Sequence record: LC819006.1
Strand: one strand, 5' to 3'
Length of the DNA stretch: 64,000 nucleotides
In this document: positions 4,997-62,593 of the stretch, piece after piece
Numbering within the stretch: position 1 is the first letter of the stretch
Layout of the letters: each line of letters starts with the position of its first letter
Position numbers and translations under genes: made by a program
The notes under the pieces: model-generated
Told to the model about the DNA's origin: nothing
The model's input: only the letters and a program-made list of their open reading frames with translations
Database searches by the model: none

Positions 4997-5023
4997 CTTC
5001 TACTCCATTTTAAAAAGATTAAA

Positions 5024-5055
5024 CACAGACAGATGCCCGAAGGCATCTGTCTGTG
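5024..5055 (-). terminator. Hairpin (UUCG loop on - strand), copy 1 of an identical 26-bp core
   Basis: CACAGACAGATGCC-CGAA-GGCATCTGTCTGTG. Confidence 0.7.
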
Positions 5056-5064
5056 ATCAAGAGG

Positions 5065-7855: not shown

Positions 7856-9460
7856 TTACTGCTGTTCGCCATCCGGACCCGGATAGTCGATCGACGACTT
7901 CACCACCCAATCCGAAAGAGGCGGTTTACCTTCCAGGCTGCGAATGAAGTTCTTCACTCGTACTTCGAACGGCATTACACGTCCGTCATACGTTTCGTAC
8001 AGATGGTCGACCAATGCTGCGATGAACGCGTTCAGCTTCGTTTCACGATCCGGATCAGTCGGATCGATCTTCAGCATGTTCGGGTTGATGTAGTGTTCAA
8101 CTGCTGCACGAATGAAGTACTTCGGGTCTTCCGGGTTAGCGAAACGGTTGAACTTCTGATCCGTCTCTTCAAGCAAAGGACCAGGTTCGACACCTGGGAA
8201 AGTTCCCCAGACGTGAGCAATCAACGTACGCTTGATCGTTTCGAATTGCGACATGCGTTCTTCTTCTGTGCCTTCCAGATAGAAGAGACTCGGCGACAGG
8301 TAGTTCTCGACAGCTTGTCGGACCAACAGAAGCTGCTTGTAGTCTGGATACTGCTGAAGCTTCACGCCTTCATGACCTGCCGATTGACGCATCTGACCAG
8401 AAATCAGTTTCTTCGCCGAAGAACGCGAGGCAACCATGGCGTCATAGAACTGGGTGAAGTTGGGAGTTCGATCGTGAGTATCGTACGCTACCATCTGGTC
8501 CTTGTAGACAACATTCGGAACCAGATTCTTCTCGACGATACGAACAGTCGCACCGACACACTGTTGCTGGAACAAAGATTCCCACGGTTCGGGCTTCACA
8601 GCCGTCTCGTATTGTTCATCGTTCCAGGTAACCGGGATACCCAGCACCCGAAGCTTATCGGCGATGATACCGCACAATGCCGACTTACCCACGCCGGTAC
8701 GACCCATCACCACGACACGAATGTCCCCACCATTCAGGTAGTCGAGCGGAAGACCCTGACGACCCAGAACAGCCAATGTCCATGCCACGGCACCATCCCA
8801 CATGACGCGAGCATTCTTCGTGTCATAATGACCGTACTGATTAGGATAGTGCGGATGGTCCGGATCGTAACGCTGGACATCCTTGATGAAGTTCTGCTGA
8901 CGTGCGAACGATTCGAACGCTTTGGTATCGTCGACGATGACGTCCGGCCGCTGTTCGATCAAACCGGTCTGCCAGCCATATGGCTCGATCTTGACTTCAT
9001 GATAGCGGGCCAGTTGACGAACGTAAGCGACCGCATCGGACTCGTGCCAGAAATCGACGGAGTGTTTTACCATTCCGTTTTCGTAGCGCGAATAGACGCC
9101 GTAGCCTTTCGTTTCATCATTAGCGCCGTCCATCTGAATTTCGATGGAACCCTGCTCCAGTTCCTTAAACGGAGCAAGCTGAAGACCGATGATCTTACCC
9201 GCCTTTTTATTGACGGTATGTTGGCCGATGTAGACAGGTATTTTGTATTCGTAGGCGAGGTTGGTCGCCGTTGCTGCAGCCTGACCGATGTCGGTGAAGT
9301 AATTCGGATCGACTGGACTCAGGCTGCTGTCTTCGTGTTCCCAGAACAGAATCCAGCCAGCGAACCCGCGTTCGCCCTTCGCTTCAAATGCAGCGACTAC
9401 TTCACCATCGAGGTTTTTCACTGCGGGAATAACGCGAACCGACTTTGCTTTGTTCTGCAT
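7856..9460 (-). CDS. Mosaic multi-domain hypothetical protein with an internal P-loop-like segment
   Basis: Contains VVVMGRTGVGKS. Likely ATG at 9460 after an AAGGTG SD. Confidence 0.65.
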   Translation of the reverse strand: MQNKAKSVRVIPAVKNLDGEVVAAFEAKGERGFAGWILFWEHEDSSLSPVDPNYFTDIGQAAATATNLAYEYKIPVYIGQHTVNKKAGKIIGLQLAPFKELEQGSIEIQMDGANDETKGYGVYSRYENGMVKHSVDFWHESDAVAYVRQLARYHEVKIEPYGWQTGLIEQRPDVIVDDTKAFESFARQQNFIKDVQRYDPDHPHYPNQYGHYDTKNARVMWDGAVAWTLAVLGRQGLPLDYLNGGDIRVVVMGRTGVGKSALCGIIADKLRVLGIPVTWNDEQYETAVKPEPWESLFQQQCVGATVRIVEKNLVPNVVYKDQMVAYDTHDRTPNFTQFYDAMVASRSSAKKLISGQMRQSAGHEGVKLQQYPDYKQLLLVRQAVENYLSPSLFYLEGTEEERMSQFETIKRTLIAHVWGTFPGVEPGPLLEETDQKFNRFANPEDPKYFIRAAVEHYINPNMLKIDPTDPDRETKLNAFIAALVDHLYETYDGRVMPFEVRVKNFIRSLEGKPPLSDWVVKSSIDYPGPDGEQQ

Positions 9461-9491
9461 GTTGTACACCTTTTAAAAAGAGACATAGAGC

Positions 9492-9521
9492 ATAGACAGA
9501 TGCCCGAAGGCATCTGTCTAT
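9492..9521 (-). terminator. Hairpin, copy 2 of the identical 26-bp core
   Basis: ATAGACAGATGCC-CGAA-GGCATCTGTCTAT. Confidence 0.7.
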
Positions 9522-9534
9522 TCACGCTTCGACG

Positions 9535-15105: not shown

Positions 15106-15179
15106 ATTTGAATCTCCGTTGTAAAAGGAAAACATAGTCCACAGGATGAGGCATTGCCTCATCCTGGGAGAAGTCGTGT

Positions 15180-26886: not shown

Positions 26887-27420
26887 TTAATAACTCCGGT
26901 TCGATAGGCGCTGAGCCGTTACCACGTTTTGCGGAAAGTCATTCAGTTCGTCGAAATGACTCTCATGTACGTCCACCCTGAAGGTGAAGTTATTGATCTT
27001 GGTGATCTCGGTGACAGCAGTAAGATCGCTCGTGTAATGAGGATCGTCCTCATGACCACGAGGCATCTGGTGAGGCGCGAAGTAATAGCCTGCACCTTGC
27101 AGTTCTGAAAATACTTCTTCACCGCAGAACAAAATCAGATCTCTTAAGCGATCCCGATCCAGATGTGAGAGATGGTATCGACCAATCCCAAACTGATTCA
27201 GGATGCTATATGCGAGATCTTCGAGATTCTGTTCGCATGCAGCCATTGATCGCGGAAACATTGCACACGCGGTCATGACTTCTTCCATGAAAGCATAAAA
27301 CGTCAACGCTTTCAGAAACCGGTAATACTCAGGCCATGGTGCGATTTGTGCTAGCTCAGTCTCCTTAACGAACTCTTCGTAAGAGCGTTTGAGCCTTATA
27401 ACAAAAGTGAGTTGTGCCAT
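26887..27420 (-). CDS. Hypothetical protein
   Basis: 177-aa ORF. Confidence 0.6.
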   Translation of the reverse strand: MAQLTFVIRLKRSYEEFVKETELAQIAPWPEYYRFLKALTFYAFMEEVMTACAMFPRSMAACEQNLEDLAYSILNQFGIGRYHLSHLDRDRLRDLILFCGEEVFSELQGAGYYFAPHQMPRGHEDDPHYTSDLTAVTEITKINNFTFRVDVHESHFDELNDFPQNVVTAQRLSNRSY

Positions 27421-27829
27421 TTCGCAGGGGATGTTTTACAACGATTGCAAAATTGGAACGAGAGACTGGAATGACCCTGACGGGTCGAGTTCCTCTCTCA
27501 CGGATGTAATCGAAAAGATGAATGTCTTCAAACATCTCAACGATAGATTCACAGATTGCAAAAAGAATCCCGCAGATCTTTGCATACGGTTCATCTTGCG
27601 AGAAGATGTATTCCGGAACGATTCCTTTATCGCAGAGTTTGCCGATGAAGTAATCGATCTCGTTTATTTGTTCACGAGCTTCTTGTACATTATTCAGTCC
27701 CTCAGTGAGGAACTTAACTAACTCTTCCAACAGATCGCGACGGTTAACGTCCTCGAACATTCCGGTCGTATCGAAACGACGTATATGGCGATCAATGTTG
27801 AAGATCACACCGAATCGATATTTCGCCAT
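27365..27829 (-). CDS. Hypothetical protein
   Basis: ATG 27829 (MAKYRF...) lies just after the structured leader. Confidence 0.55.
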   Translation of the reverse strand: MAKYRFGVIFNIDRHIRRFDTTGMFEDVNRRDLLEELVKFLTEGLNNVQEAREQINEIDYFIGKLCDKGIVPEYIFSQDEPYAKICGILFAICESIVEMFEDIHLFDYIRERGTRPVRVIPVSRSNFAIVVKHPLRNGTTHFCYKAQTLLRRVR

Positions 27830-27841
27830 GATTACCCAATT

Positions 27842-28000
27842 AGAAAAAGATCCCCGTCCAGACCCGAGAGGGTCTGGATCGGGGCGACACTTATGACACG
27901 ACAGGATCAACGGCTAAATCGGATCACTCACCATGCCATTAGTCCCGAGAGAATAGCGCCCGAGTCGAGGAGAAGACTCTGGAGATGGGCAGCTATTCAA
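27842..28000 (-). ncRNA. Candidate structured early small RNA or attenuating leader
   Basis: Non-coding gap between early promoter (28005-28021) and a GC-rich hairpin plus U-tract (27842-27884). Internal long stem at 27951-27998. Confidence 0.45.
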
Positions 28001-28004
28001 TTAG

Positions 28005-28021
28005 GTAATATATCGGTGAAA
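28005..28021 (-). promoter_or_regulatory. Early promoter TTTCACC-GATATATTAC
   Basis: Immediately after the thyA stop. Confidence 0.72.
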
Positions 28022-28025
28022 TCAG

Positions 28026-29267
28026 TTACACCGCTGCCGGCTTGAAACGGATCGGCGGGTGCGACTTGTAGTACACCGTCAGGCGAGTGGAGTCGAACTT
28101 CGTCACGTCTTCCAGAGTCGGGTCGACAATGATGCGAGCCGGTTCCATCGGCGTGCGTTCCAGTTGTTTCTTCACGCCTTCATGCTGGTCGTGGTAGATG
28201 TGGTAGTCACCCATGAAGTGGGTGTATTCCCACGGAACGAAACCCGTGACTTCAGCGAGCAGGTGAGCAAGCAACGAGTACATGCCGACATTGAACACCG
28301 TGCCGAGCGGCACGTCTTGCGAACGAGCGAAGCATGCGAGCGAGAGCTTGCGTGCAGTGAAACCGCCGTCGAGGATCTTGTCGACTTCCAGCTGACCCGC
28401 TTCGGTGAGTTCGAGTTCGCTGTCGTTGCCCAGGTTGTACTGCATACCCTTGCCGACGAGCAGACCGCGAGTAACGAGCTCATTGTTGATGCGTGTCTTG
28501 TAGTACAGTTCCTGCGCTTCGTGCGACAGACCGCGCATTCCGCCGAAGACTTCCTTGAAGATCGCGACTGCGAAGTCTTCCTGATCCATCGAGTAGCGCA
28601 GGACTTCGAATGCGGACATCGGGGCCGTGTTGACCTGCCACATCGAGTGACACGGAGCGAGTGCCATACGACCAGCGTCTGCGTTCTGTGCAGGCGTCAT
28701 CTTGGTGTCGGGCAACAGACCTGCGTGCCATACATTCACGACCAGACGACGGCTGTCCGGATTGTTCTTCAGTTCGTTGACGATGTTCATCAGCTGATCG
28801 ACACCACCGCGCCCGCCGCTTTCGAACGGCGTCATCTTCTTGGCTGTTTCCTTCAGGAAGTATTCGCGGATTTCCGGCAGGTTCAGATCGAGCGTGCCGT
28901 AGTCGTTTGCGATCTTATCGAAGATTGCATTGACATCGCCTTCGTCCAGGCCGGTCGTCCAGTTACGCCACTGTTCGCCGTACATCGGTCCGATCGTGCC
29001 GCTTTCCGGACCCGTCCACGAGTTCCAGATCTTGTTGTCGCGGTCCTGCAGCCAGTCGACCGAGATGATGCCCTTGAGCATCCATTCCAGTTCTTCGGCG
29101 ATCTTCTTGTACTTCACCTCGCGCGTGGTCAGAATCGGCCAGATGCCGTGACGCAGCGAGAACTTCATCATGCCGCCGAACTTCGATGTCGTACCCGTGC
29201 CAGTACGATCGGTCTTCACATCGCCCGTTTCCAGGATGTCTTTCAAAACGTCGAGATACTGTTTCAT
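28026..29267 (-). CDS. thyA: Thymidylate synthase with two large insertions
   Basis: DRTGTGT, GPMYGEQWR, NPDSRR, ALAPCH (catalytic Cys), RSQDVPLGTVFN, GDYHIY. Confidence 0.95.
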   Translation of the reverse strand: MKQYLDVLKDILETGDVKTDRTGTGTTSKFGGMMKFSLRHGIWPILTTREVKYKKIAEELEWMLKGIISVDWLQDRDNKIWNSWTGPESGTIGPMYGEQWRNWTTGLDEGDVNAIFDKIANDYGTLDLNLPEIREYFLKETAKKMTPFESGGRGGVDQLMNIVNELKNNPDSRRLVVNVWHAGLLPDTKMTPAQNADAGRMALAPCHSMWQVNTAPMSAFEVLRYSMDQEDFAVAIFKEVFGGMRGLSHEAQELYYKTRINNELVTRGLLVGKGMQYNLGNDSELELTEAGQLEVDKILDGGFTARKLSLACFARSQDVPLGTVFNVGMYSLLAHLLAEVTGFVPWEYTHFMGDYHIYHDQHEGVKKQLERTPMEPARIIVDPTLEDVTKFDSTRLTVYYKSHPPIRFKPAAV

Positions 29268-29300: not shown

Positions 29301-29681
29301 TTACAGACGAATTTCCATGACCGACAATCGAGTGCCGGGCTTAATGATCACTCGTTCGGGAAGAGGAATACAACTAATCTGTTCTAGATACTTTTTGAAG
29401 TAATACATCGTCTCTTCAACTCGCAGCAGATAGGACATTACATCCGCTGGGAGCCTGCCGAGTCTTTCTCTGATGTCGATTTCAACATCGTCCAGGAATT
29501 CACATAGGACGTAATCGAAATCGTCGCCATCTCGAACCATTTGTCCTTGCAGTCTTTCGACCAATTCCTCACAGAGTTCGAGATAATCGTATTCTATAAA
29601 AATCGGCTGTTCTTCTCTTAACAGCCGACTGATGCGTCTTTTCTCGTAAGTATCACCGACGAGGTAGCGGGTTTCTCGCAT
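29301..29681 (-). CDS. Acidic hypothetical protein
   Basis: 126-aa ORF, weak SD. Confidence 0.55.
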   Translation of the reverse strand: MRETRYLVGDTYEKRRISRLLREEQPIFIEYDYLELCEELVERLQGQMVRDGDDFDYVLCEFLDDVEIDIRERLGRLPADVMSYLLRVEETMYYFKKYLEQISCIPLPERVIIKPGTRLSVMEIRL

Positions 29682-30031
29682 TTGCGTATCAATCCGAAAA
29701 GCGACAACGGACTAACGTTGTAGATCTCGAAGTCTCCTAATGAATCTAGAAGTTCGAACTGTTGCAACTGTCTAACCATTTGCTTAGCCAACTTCGCAAG
29801 CTTCCGTAGAATCTTGTTGGCCTTTTCAAAAGTATTTCCTTGAGCATAAAGATAGCGACGGGTGCCTTCCAGGTAGTATCTCAAACTTTTGGAAGACTTC
29901 TTCACGCCGAATACTCGGCTCACCCGAAGGTGTTCGTAAAATCCTTCCAGAAGTTTAAAATATCGCCGCTTAAAGCGAACGAGCTTTGGGACTGGCTTTT
30001 TAAAGCCAAAAAGAAGAATGTCTGTTTTCAT
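29618..30031 (-). CDS. Basic hypothetical protein
   Basis: ATG 30031 just downstream of early promoter 30073. AT-rich, no clear SD. Confidence 0.5.
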   Translation of the reverse strand: MKTDILLFGFKKPVPKLVRFKRRYFKLLEGFYEHLRVSRVFGVKKSSKSLRYYLEGTRRYLYAQGNTFEKANKILRKLAKLAKQMVRQLQQFELLDSLGDFEIYNVSPLSLFGLIRKCEKPATSSVILTRKDASVGC

Positions 30032-30072
30032 GCCAATGAAAGGTTGATATGAAATCAACTTACAACAAAGTT

Positions 30073-30089
30073 GTAATATATGGCTGATC
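30073..30089 (-). promoter_or_regulatory. Early promoter GATCAGC-CATATATTAC
   Basis: Intergenic, after terminator 30118-30144. Confidence 0.68.
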
Positions 30090-30117
30090 AAAACTGGAAT
30101 AAAACGGACATAAAGGA

Positions 30118-30144
30118 TACCAGGAGGCACGAAGCCTCCTGGTA
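30118..30144 (-). terminator. Hairpin after the 29-aa peptide gene
   Basis: TACCAGGAGGC-ACGAA-GCCTCCTGGTA. Confidence 0.7.
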
Positions 30145-30169
30145 CTCTCACTCAGTCCTGACTAGCAGG

Positions 30170-61829: not shown

Positions 61830-61865
61830 AAGAAGCCCGGTATGATTTGTCAAAAGTCATAGAAT

Positions 61866-61891
61866 CGTACCTAGGCTTGCGCCTAGGTACG
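61866..61891 (-). terminator. Hairpin (GCAA loop) after tmk
   Basis: CGTACCTAGGC-TTGC-GCCTAGGTACG. Confidence 0.68.
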
Positions 61892-61897
61892 AGTTCG

Positions 61898-62593
61898 TTA
61901 ACCGATGTACTGGATGATATTGTCGACCGACTTCTGCACTTCACTGATCGAGCGGGTTGCATCGACAGTGAAAAGAGGCCCGGCTTCCTGCATGATTCGC
62001 TGGCTGAACTGCGCACGGAAGTTCTGGATGAGGTTCTCGAAGAATTCGTCCGGCTTCGTTTCGAATGCATCCTTCACATCACCGGACGCACTTACACGTT
62101 CATCGACACGAGCGCGAGAAGTCGCCAGATCGATGTCCAGAAAGATCGTGGCGTAGCCTTTGATCTGGCTATAGAGCCATGCCCGCGTTTGAAGCGGATA
62201 TGAAGCCAGAATGTTGGGCAGATTCAGATGGTAGTCGAACATCTGATCACAGAGCTTCTTAGGGATTCCCTGAGTGAAGTGCTGGTATACCCATGTCGTG
62301 TCGTTCCAACGGTCACTGATGACCACCTGGCCAGCCAGAAGGGCAGGTATGATGTTCTCGACCAGTACCCGGCGCCGCAAATACAGAATACACGACAAAA
62401 CTGCCGGCATCGGGATTTTCTGATGAATCCATGCGTCCCGCATGAACGATGCTTCTTCGTCTTTCGGATATGCCGCGACAACGACATTCGGAATGCCTTT
62501 AGCCGTCAGGTATTCGCCGATGTATTTCGAGATACTGCTCTTACCGCTACCGTCGATGCCTTCAACGGTCCAGAAACGATTGTCACTTGCCAC
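61898..62593 (-). CDS. tmk: Thymidylate (dTMP) kinase
   Basis: VEGIDGSGKSS P-loop, ISDRW, IFLDID. Confidence 0.9.
   Translation of the reverse strand: MASDNRFWTVEGIDGSGKSSISKYIGEYLTAKGIPNVVVAAYPKDEEASFMRDAWIHQKIPMPAVLSCILYLRRRVLVENIIPALLAGQVVISDRWNDTTWVYQHFTQGIPKKLCDQMFDYHLNLPNILASYPLQTRAWLYSQIKGYATIFLDIDLATSRARVDERVSASGDVKDAFETKPDEFFENLIQNFRAQFSQRIMQEAGPLFTVDATRSISEVQKSVDNIIQYIG

Follow-up and report, generated by a model that had tools for sequence, protein, structure and literature searches.

Short RNAs derived from the leaders of genes are already on record for the phiKZ-like phages. For phiKZ itself, the published account places 42 terminators in 5'UTRs, with 34 of the 42 giving a predominant transcript that is either shorter than 250 nt or long, and lists 17 ncRNA candidates (e.g. 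a 71-nt RNA before PHIKZ221 and a 141-nt RNA before PHIKZ302), two of the 17 being confirmed by northern blot (PMC10914365), while typical phiKZ leaders measure 31-40 nt (PMC8244752). For 201phi2-1, 11 sRNAs are reported, of which eight are derived from 5'UTRs (PMC11512511). These leader RNAs are catalogued, and in the publications consulted none comes with a function or with comparative support. Among the RNAs of bacteria, the CU-rich double-hairpin sRNAs of Burkholderia (RF02278) are predicted to cover ribosome-binding sites, and over-expression of ncS27 slows growth (PMC5688073).

The locus considered here was found in a window (the whole stretch of DNA that was analysed, 64 kb in length) that corresponds to bases 124001-188000 of Ralstonia phage FLC4-11C (whole genome 225.6 kb), with the segment 27000-29500 being 100% identical to both this phage and Burkholderia phage FLC8. 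Both are members of the genus Chiangmaivirus, as are RSL2 and RSF1, jumbo phages related to phiKZ whose genomes encode multisubunit RNA polymerases (PMC5468394). The local genes, including those for thymidylate synthase (thyA) and gp168, lie on the minus strand, and the region between these two genes is, in our estimation (with a probability of about 0.6, as judged from the sequence and its relatives), a gene present in one copy whose product is a structured non-coding RNA of ~156 nt; it would combine three roles, those of a small transcription unit, of the 3' end for the thyA mRNA and of a leader for the gp168-gp164 operon (Table 1).

Like the 5'UTR-derived ncRNAs of phiKZ and 201phi2-1, this post-thyA RNA belongs to the same phage group, with the same polymerases and early-promoter motif, has its start and terminator less than 250 nt apart (placed here in silico), on the gene strand and just ahead of a gene, lacks a conserved ORF and is conserved within its genus. 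It differs from them in showing no BLASTN similarity to any phage outside its genus (the likeness being one of architecture and not of descent), in being a predicted transcript, and in standing directly behind a gene with no terminator in between; moreover, it has covariation support, whereas none is reported for the phiKZ and 201phi2-1 candidates in the publications consulted. Type I 3'UTR-derived sRNAs of bacteria possess their own promoter at the gene end and share the terminator of that gene. The post-thyA RNA resembles them in that its promoter begins 5 nt after the thyA stop and a shared terminator is predicted, and departs from them in being also the leader of the next operon and in using a promoter type and polymerase of the phage's own. 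The kind of element is already known and the post-thyA member is undescribed; the papers searched on FLC6, SURPRISE13 and RP12/RP31 with RSL2/RSF1 hold no mention of promoters, terminators or small RNAs, and our literature search for a transcriptome or ncRNA description in Chiangmaivirus found none.

Table 1. Coordinates (in the window) of the post-thyA RNA, its parts and its flanking genes.
Feature	Coordinates	Strand	Basis
thyA (thymidylate synthase, 413 aa), gene upstream of the RNA	28026..29267	minus	PF00303, E = 1.9e-72
Predicted phiKZ-type early promoter element, TTTCACCGA-TATATTAC	28005..28021	minus	Motif, context and near-invariance in relatives
Predicted ~156-nt non-coding RNA (predicted start to end of U-tract)	27843..27998	minus	MFE, covariance model
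SL1, 5'-terminal stem-loop	27951..27998	minus	14 pairs, 100% paired, 5 with compensatory changes
P2 hairpin, 12 bp, CGGGA.CUAAUGGC with GCCGUUG.AUCCUG	27902..27947	minus	RNAalifold, 12 sequences
Spacer, 17 nt, predicted single-stranded, UCGUGUCAUAAGUGUCG	27885..27901	minus	RNAalifold consensus
Predicted intrinsic terminator, hairpin 27884-27852 and tail AUCUUUUUC 27851-27843	27843..27884	minus	-27.6 kcal/mol
gp168 (154 aa), first gene downstream of the RNA	27365..27829	minus	ATG at 27829; conserved start MAKYRFG

A sequence-only reading of this DNA had proposed an early promoter right after thyA, and a predicted phiKZ-type element does occupy that very place: TTTCACCGATATATTAC (28021-28005, minus strand) begins 5 nt past the thyA stop codon (28028-26, minus strand) and carries the core motif TATATTAC at 28012-28005, which is the predicted phiKZ promoter as listed in Table 2 of PMC7058600. 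The core occurs three times in the 64-kb window (versus 0.4 expected). Exact matches in the 225.6-kb genome number only eight, every one of them on the minus strand and embedded in the arrangement tTCAnnGA-TATATTAC-n5-TGA. A position-weight scan of the genome returned 15 sites (again all on the minus strand), among which the post-thyA site ranks third, and the sites of both sets (exact and weight-matrix) are co-oriented with the genes. As the early-promoter motifs of phiKZ-like phages are centred near -10 (PMC7598289), we predict that the transcript starts at ~27998, where a conserved downstream TGA (27999-27997) would mark the start region; this position is also where the SL1 stem has its first base. 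Furthermore, the promoter block is near-invariant in 12 relatives (the distant metagenomic contig L023 included), and the post-thyA site is the only one of the 15 predicted early promoters to have a strong terminator within 300 nt on its 3' side. Its leader (169 nt) is also the longest, those of the other early promoters spanning 7-119 nt. A sigma-70 pattern scan yielded no site in the region. Since RSL2 and RSF1 do not multiply in rifampicin (PMC5468394), it is not certain that the virion RNA polymerase is the user of this motif in Chiangmaivirus.

At the other end of the unit, the GC-rich hairpin with a U tract that had been read from the letters alone was recovered on the minus strand in the same position, while its distance to the gp168 ATG, given as 13 nt, had to be corrected to 12 nt (counted from 27842 to 27829). 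The hairpin (33 nt, G+C-rich) is the tenth strongest of the ~90 hairpin-plus-T-run sites at -14 kcal/mol or below in the genome. Since no terminator-like hairpin was found between the thyA stop and 27884, the thyA transcripts, on the predicted layout, must run into the RNA region and end at its terminator too; by the same token, with a gap of just 12 nt from U-tract to ATG, the gp168-gp164 operon must, if the terminator is as predicted, be reachable only through read-through. The arrangement differs from that seen elsewhere in the genome, where a terminator is followed by a promoter (e.g. a hairpin at genome positions 104231-104190 and a promoter at 104163, or the hairpin at window positions 30145-30117 and the promoter at 30080-30073); here the order is promoter, 115 nt, terminator. 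The other genome terminators closely follow the preceding gene, with no conserved sequence of ~110 nt in between. Many of them lie 20-30 nt before the next ATG and have tails of the form (A/C)TCTTTTT, a style shared by the post-thyA tail.

As a more general observation on this genome, its terminators have a house style: the hairpins are long and G+C-rich, their loops are frequently UUCG or GCAA, and no recognisable promoter precedes the next ATG; examples on the minus strand of the window are found at 5020-5059, 9483-9527, 15131-15175 and 61856-61902 (genome coordinates 129020-129059, 133483-133527, 139131-139175 and 185856-185902, respectively). Given terminators placed 20-30 nt before an ATG and no promoter in between, read-through or processing must, as far as such predictions go, be common in this phage.

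The RNA delimited by these two elements folds with a minimum free energy of -71.4 kcal/mol (z = -5.65; 0 of 200 shuffles as good), and the opposite (plus) strand has a weaker fold (-59.2 kcal/mol, z = -3.8). The sequence-only reading had described a long stem at 27951-27998 within a unit of ~160-170 nt; the stem is present as described, and the unit stands as well, with a length nearer to ~156 nt. This 5'-terminal stem-loop (SL1) has a bulge of 7 nt (AUCUCCA, 27986-27980) and, at its apex, a loop of 8 nt (UUCUCCUC, 27974-27967). The UCUCCUC of the apical loop is identical in 12 of 12 aligned sequences, the bulge is kept in ten of the 12 (differing in the contigs L021 and L018), and both UCUCC motifs have a probability of being unpaired of at least 0.98 in eight phage homologues. 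The second module, P2, closes a 20-nt loop that contains an invariant GAUCCG (27925-27920). All of its 12 pairs are 100% paired, nine of them never varying and three varying on one side only, and because the pairs hardly vary there is no compensatory proof for this helix, which (as modelled) stays unproven by covariation. The invariance of the P2 stem and of GAUCCG fits a binding pocket, a protein site or a pairing seed equally.

Two alternative interpretations of this middle part were tried and rejected. A long middle hairpin (formed by the spacer and the 5' half of P2) is the minimum-energy choice in seven of eight phage sequences, and was dropped with the addition of metagenomic relatives: RNAalifold chose the shorter P2, and the long helix is broken (by eye) in L018 and L021. 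The P2 loop (AGGUGAUCC in seven of 12 sequences) was likewise discarded as a Shine-Dalgarno-like element, GGTGA and AGGTG being barely enriched before phage start codons. The (A)GGUGA of the P2 loop could pair with UC(G/A)CC at the terminator foot in every lineage (by eye, and with one-sided changes only); the overlap of this pairing with the full stem, which counts 14 pairs in the window, is limited to two to three basal pairs. The GATC cluster is not unusual, because GATC is over-represented genome-wide (across the whole genome there is a roughly twofold excess, with 1938 sites versus the 877 expected from base composition).

Searches for known or repeated elements were consistent with a single-copy RNA, and its lack of a recognised family agrees with the sequence-only reading. 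Rfam 15 gave no match at the gathering score, and at E <= 10 the sole match was a chance miRNA on the other strand, with no riboswitch or leader family among the results. A tRNA and tmRNA scan returned none, tandem repeats were absent from the RNA, plasmids and megaplasmids showed no similarity to the region, and the covariance model (described below) detected no second copy in the FLC4-11C genome (201.6 bits for the locus in the window, 13.9 for the next best). The earlier statement that the region has no credible ORF also held: ORFs of at least 10 codons start only from UUG or GUG, and neither their frame nor their peptide is conserved among relatives.

Each of the eight distinct Chiangmaivirus phage genomes contains the intergenic RNA region once, and none of them annotates it. 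Metagenomic relatives were reached through a search of a large protein collection with gp168 (44-85% identity), and no relative departs from the gene order (thyA, a ~193-nt gap, gp168). The eight phage sequences served to build a covariance model (its E-values being rough), which matches the thyA-gp168 gap in seven metagenomic loci with 102-191 bits. The comparative alignment comprised 12 sequences in 11 distinct rows (cultured phages and metagenomic contigs), representing approximately seven independent lineages, and its RNAalifold consensus has 38 pairs, in which 99.5% of the cells are paired and 12 pairs show changes on both sides. Compensatory changes fall in five pairs of SL1 and in seven of the 12 pairs of the terminator stem (where 98.5% of the cells are paired). 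Column shuffles of the 11 distinct sequences reached none of five measures in 500 trials, and slid-partner controls were 31-50% paired. The sequence-only reading had let its small RNA depend on structural conservation in relatives; such conservation was looked for and found, in the form of these 12 covarying pairs, which 0 of 500 shuffles equalled.

The RNA is also more conserved in sequence than its surroundings. In phage SURPRISE13 and in the contig L022 it is 85% identical to the window, with gp168 DNA at 64-66% and gp168 third codon positions at 36-38% identity (i.e. essentially saturated), and the UCUCCUC loop and the P2 hairpin are invariant even where gp168 third codon positions are 36-48% identical. 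Indels of one to two bases shift every candidate ORF between lineages, leaving the peptides unrelated. Saturated silent sites, the invariance of the loop and P2, and frame-shifting indels together indicate, as read from the alignment, that the region is under strong purifying selection as RNA. Beyond the relatives described above, scans with exact 21-mers against IMG/VR, JGI metagenomes and GTDB genomes returned only RSL2 and RSF1 or nothing, protein-pattern scans of the same three collections returned nothing new, and BLASTN (word 11) against 50,697 phage records (a set in which the presence of phiKZ and 201phi2-1 is unconfirmed) returned only Chiangmaivirus.

The most distant relative, contig L023 (thyA 61% and gp168 44% identical), keeps the promoter almost letter for letter, and its leader measures only ~84 nt, with a small 5' hairpin succeeded by a strong hairpin and UUCUUCAAAA; SL1 and P2 are absent. 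An early promoter and a terminator-like hairpin before gp168 are thus presumably the shared and older part of the element, and the body formed by SL1 and P2 is, in the present comparison, specific to a closer clade. As L023 retains the promoter and hairpin without SL1 and P2, the comparison suggests that the cis function (a promoter and a hairpin ahead of gp168) may be the oldest one. In the same contig, the gp168 homologue (574-990) is called from an ATG at 637. Translation from an ATG in the same frame at 574 yields the N-terminus that is conserved elsewhere (…YRFGIIFN…), and the start of the homologue therefore seems to have been called 63 nt too far downstream.

We propose that the virion RNA polymerase would start at the post-thyA promoter early in infection and that most transcripts would stop at the terminator, with the result that a short stable RNA accumulates, protected at its two ends by the 5' stem and the 3' hairpin, while a minority would read through and allow gp168-gp164 to be expressed at a low, attenuated level. 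Start site, 3' end, timing and efficiency of termination are each predicted from sequence. With regard to the two roles that the sequence-only reading had offered, the discrete small RNA is favoured in so far as a predicted promoter-to-terminator unit, no credible ORF and a covarying 5' stem and terminator are present, and its suggested employment as an antitoxin mimic or protein sponge is not: no computation supports it, tandem repeats are missing, and the RNA offers one invariant C/U-rich loop only, plus a second, less conserved C/U-rich bulge. The attenuator receives weak support from the 12 nt between U-tract and ATG (which make read-through obligatory), whereas its regulated form finds none, there being no conserved antiterminator: folds without the 3' arm gain 1-5 kcal/mol and the partner differs by lineage.

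The reading that deserves most attention beside ours is a purely cis-acting leader, either a sensor (riboswitch-like or protein-binding) or a fixed attenuator or insulator, with the short RNA as a by-product; we regard this as a possibility to be entertained and short of probable. The locus shares with riboswitches and attenuators the classical order of parts (promoter, conserved structured region, terminator, ribosome-binding site, ATG), gp168 would be inaccessible without read-through across its 12-nt gap, the promoter and terminator-like hairpin are common to the distant L023, the invariant loop of P2 might serve as a binding pocket or protein site, and every lineage would allow this loop to pair (as seen by eye) with the terminator foot. 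It departs from them in matching no riboswitch or leader family even at E <= 10 and in having no conserved antiterminator (the small, 1-5 kcal/mol gains having lineage-specific partners), while the loop-foot pairing would cover just two to three of the 14 stem pairs. The downstream proteins give no hint of a ligand either: the gp168-gp164 operon proteins yielded no functional clue in Pfam and PHROGs searches, gp168 itself has no Pfam or PHROG family match, and its AlphaFold model (pLDDT 78) found no fold match in the PDB by Foldseek (best E = 0.7). Translation coupling is, moreover, unlikely in a nucleus-forming phage, which speaks against such a leader. We argue that conserved sequence outside the helices would point to more than a plain attenuator.

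The remaining explanations fare worse. That the region is only the 3' UTR and terminator of the thyA operon, with an inactive TATATTAC and a conserved sequence that stabilises the thyA mRNA, agrees with the uninterrupted path from the thyA stop to the hairpin, where transcripts from the promoter at 30080-30073 would also end; we nevertheless hold it to be improbable, since the promoter block is almost invariant in 12 relatives (one of them with an unrelated RNA downstream), scores third among the 15 genome sites and predicts a start exactly on the first base of SL1, and since the other genome terminators adjoin their preceding gene without a conserved insert of ~110 nt. A small protein gene or upstream ORF is very improbable. 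The candidates are a 28-codon UUG ORF (28000-27914) and an ORF from a conserved UUG at 27910, whose frame does stay open across the hairpin in every lineage; single-base indels shift the frame and make the peptides unrelated between lineages, the stem substitutions are paired rather than codon-patterned, and the 28-codon ORF begins before the point at which the transcript is predicted to start, and its frame is broken in relatives. Finally, a function of the plus strand (as antisense RNA or through a mechanically called 86-codon ORF at 27785-28045) has next to nothing in its favour beyond the presence of that ORF: several conserved G-U pairs of the minus strand would become C-A mismatches, the fold is 12 kcal/mol worse, indels break the ORF in relatives, and the promoter and U-tract are oriented with the minus-strand genes.

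Returning to the discrete structured RNA, we tentatively suggest that the short transcript might act in trans by base pairing through its exposed C/U-rich apical loop, which would then occlude the ribosome-binding sites of messages from the host or the phage. The loop sequence UCUCCUC is reverse complementary to ribosome-binding sites of the GAGGA/GGAGA type (GAGGAGA-type sites), and GAGGA, GGAGA and AGGAG show a three- to fourfold enrichment within the 20 nt that precede phage start codons. On the other hand, duplex energies against 684 candidate phage start regions were no better than those of shuffled queries, a search for phage targets by 7-mer complements and short-word BLAST gave nothing above chance, and the longest exact match of the RNA to the genome (13 nt) equals chance expectation. 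A further resemblance exists to the 'toxic' RF02278 sRNAs (ncS27 and relatives) of the Burkholderiales, which occur in the host genus of this phage, end in a terminator hairpin and display an unpaired C/U-rich stretch complementary to ribosome-binding sites (here UCUCCUC). In contrast to them, the post-thyA RNA is phage-encoded, has no match to the family at E <= 10 and comprises three modules in 156 nt instead of two hairpins in ~60-90 nt. That it is a trans-acting early regulator copying the growth-slowing CU-rich sRNAs of the host (with UCUCCUC perhaps helped by the P2 loop), and serving host takeover or the timing of phage gene expression, seems doubtful to us, and we put it forward as speculation.

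Among the leader-type RNAs of this phage group, the post-thyA RNA represents a clean case (single copy, more conserved than the neighbouring genes, two covarying helices), and its invariant single-stranded loop suggests what to look for. It is a well-defined candidate for studying the roles of early small RNAs in nucleus-forming phages, and the phages that carry it infect Ralstonia and Burkholderia glumae and are studied as biocontrol agents of plant disease. Should the cis reading be true, the locus would exemplify how adjacent early units are separated and a downstream operon is dosed; should the trans reading be true, no small RNA from a phiKZ-like phage would, to our knowledge, have been assigned a function before it.

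Several minor observations concern the gene calls around the locus. The thymidylate synthase spans 413 aa versus the 266 positions of the Pfam profile and its match is split in two stretches, which indicates a large insertion in the enzyme; outside the genus, the closest relatives are only ~31% identical and occur in SPN3US-like jumbo phages. gp168 lacks annotation in the records of RSL2 (1363-1830 of the extracted locus) and RSF1 (1358-1822), and in SURPRISE13 (2068-2541) a small ORF on the opposite strand is annotated instead of the conserved gene. The following gene, gp167, is annotated shorter in FLC4-11C; a 177-aa form (26887-27420) aligns with PHROG 28923 over the full length, agrees with the gene call of the metagenomic contigs and overlaps the 3' end of gp168 (27365-27829) by 56 nt in another frame.

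Further upstream (window 29618-30151, minus strand), a 12-bp terminator hairpin (30145-30117) is succeeded by a second exact early-promoter motif (30080-30073), on the 3' side of which lies a minus-strand ORF of 134 codons (ATG at 30019, to 29618) that overlaps the annotated start of gp170 (29681) by 64 nt. FLC6 and FLC4-4C annotate a minus-strand gene in this place, whereas FLC4-11C has the plus-strand gp171 (29840-30052), which is probably spurious. At genome coordinates 8043-8091, beyond the window, the early promoter with the highest score in the genome is immediately followed by a 37-nt 5' hairpin (-12.5 kcal/mol) and CUUUU, and this could be a very short attenuated leader.
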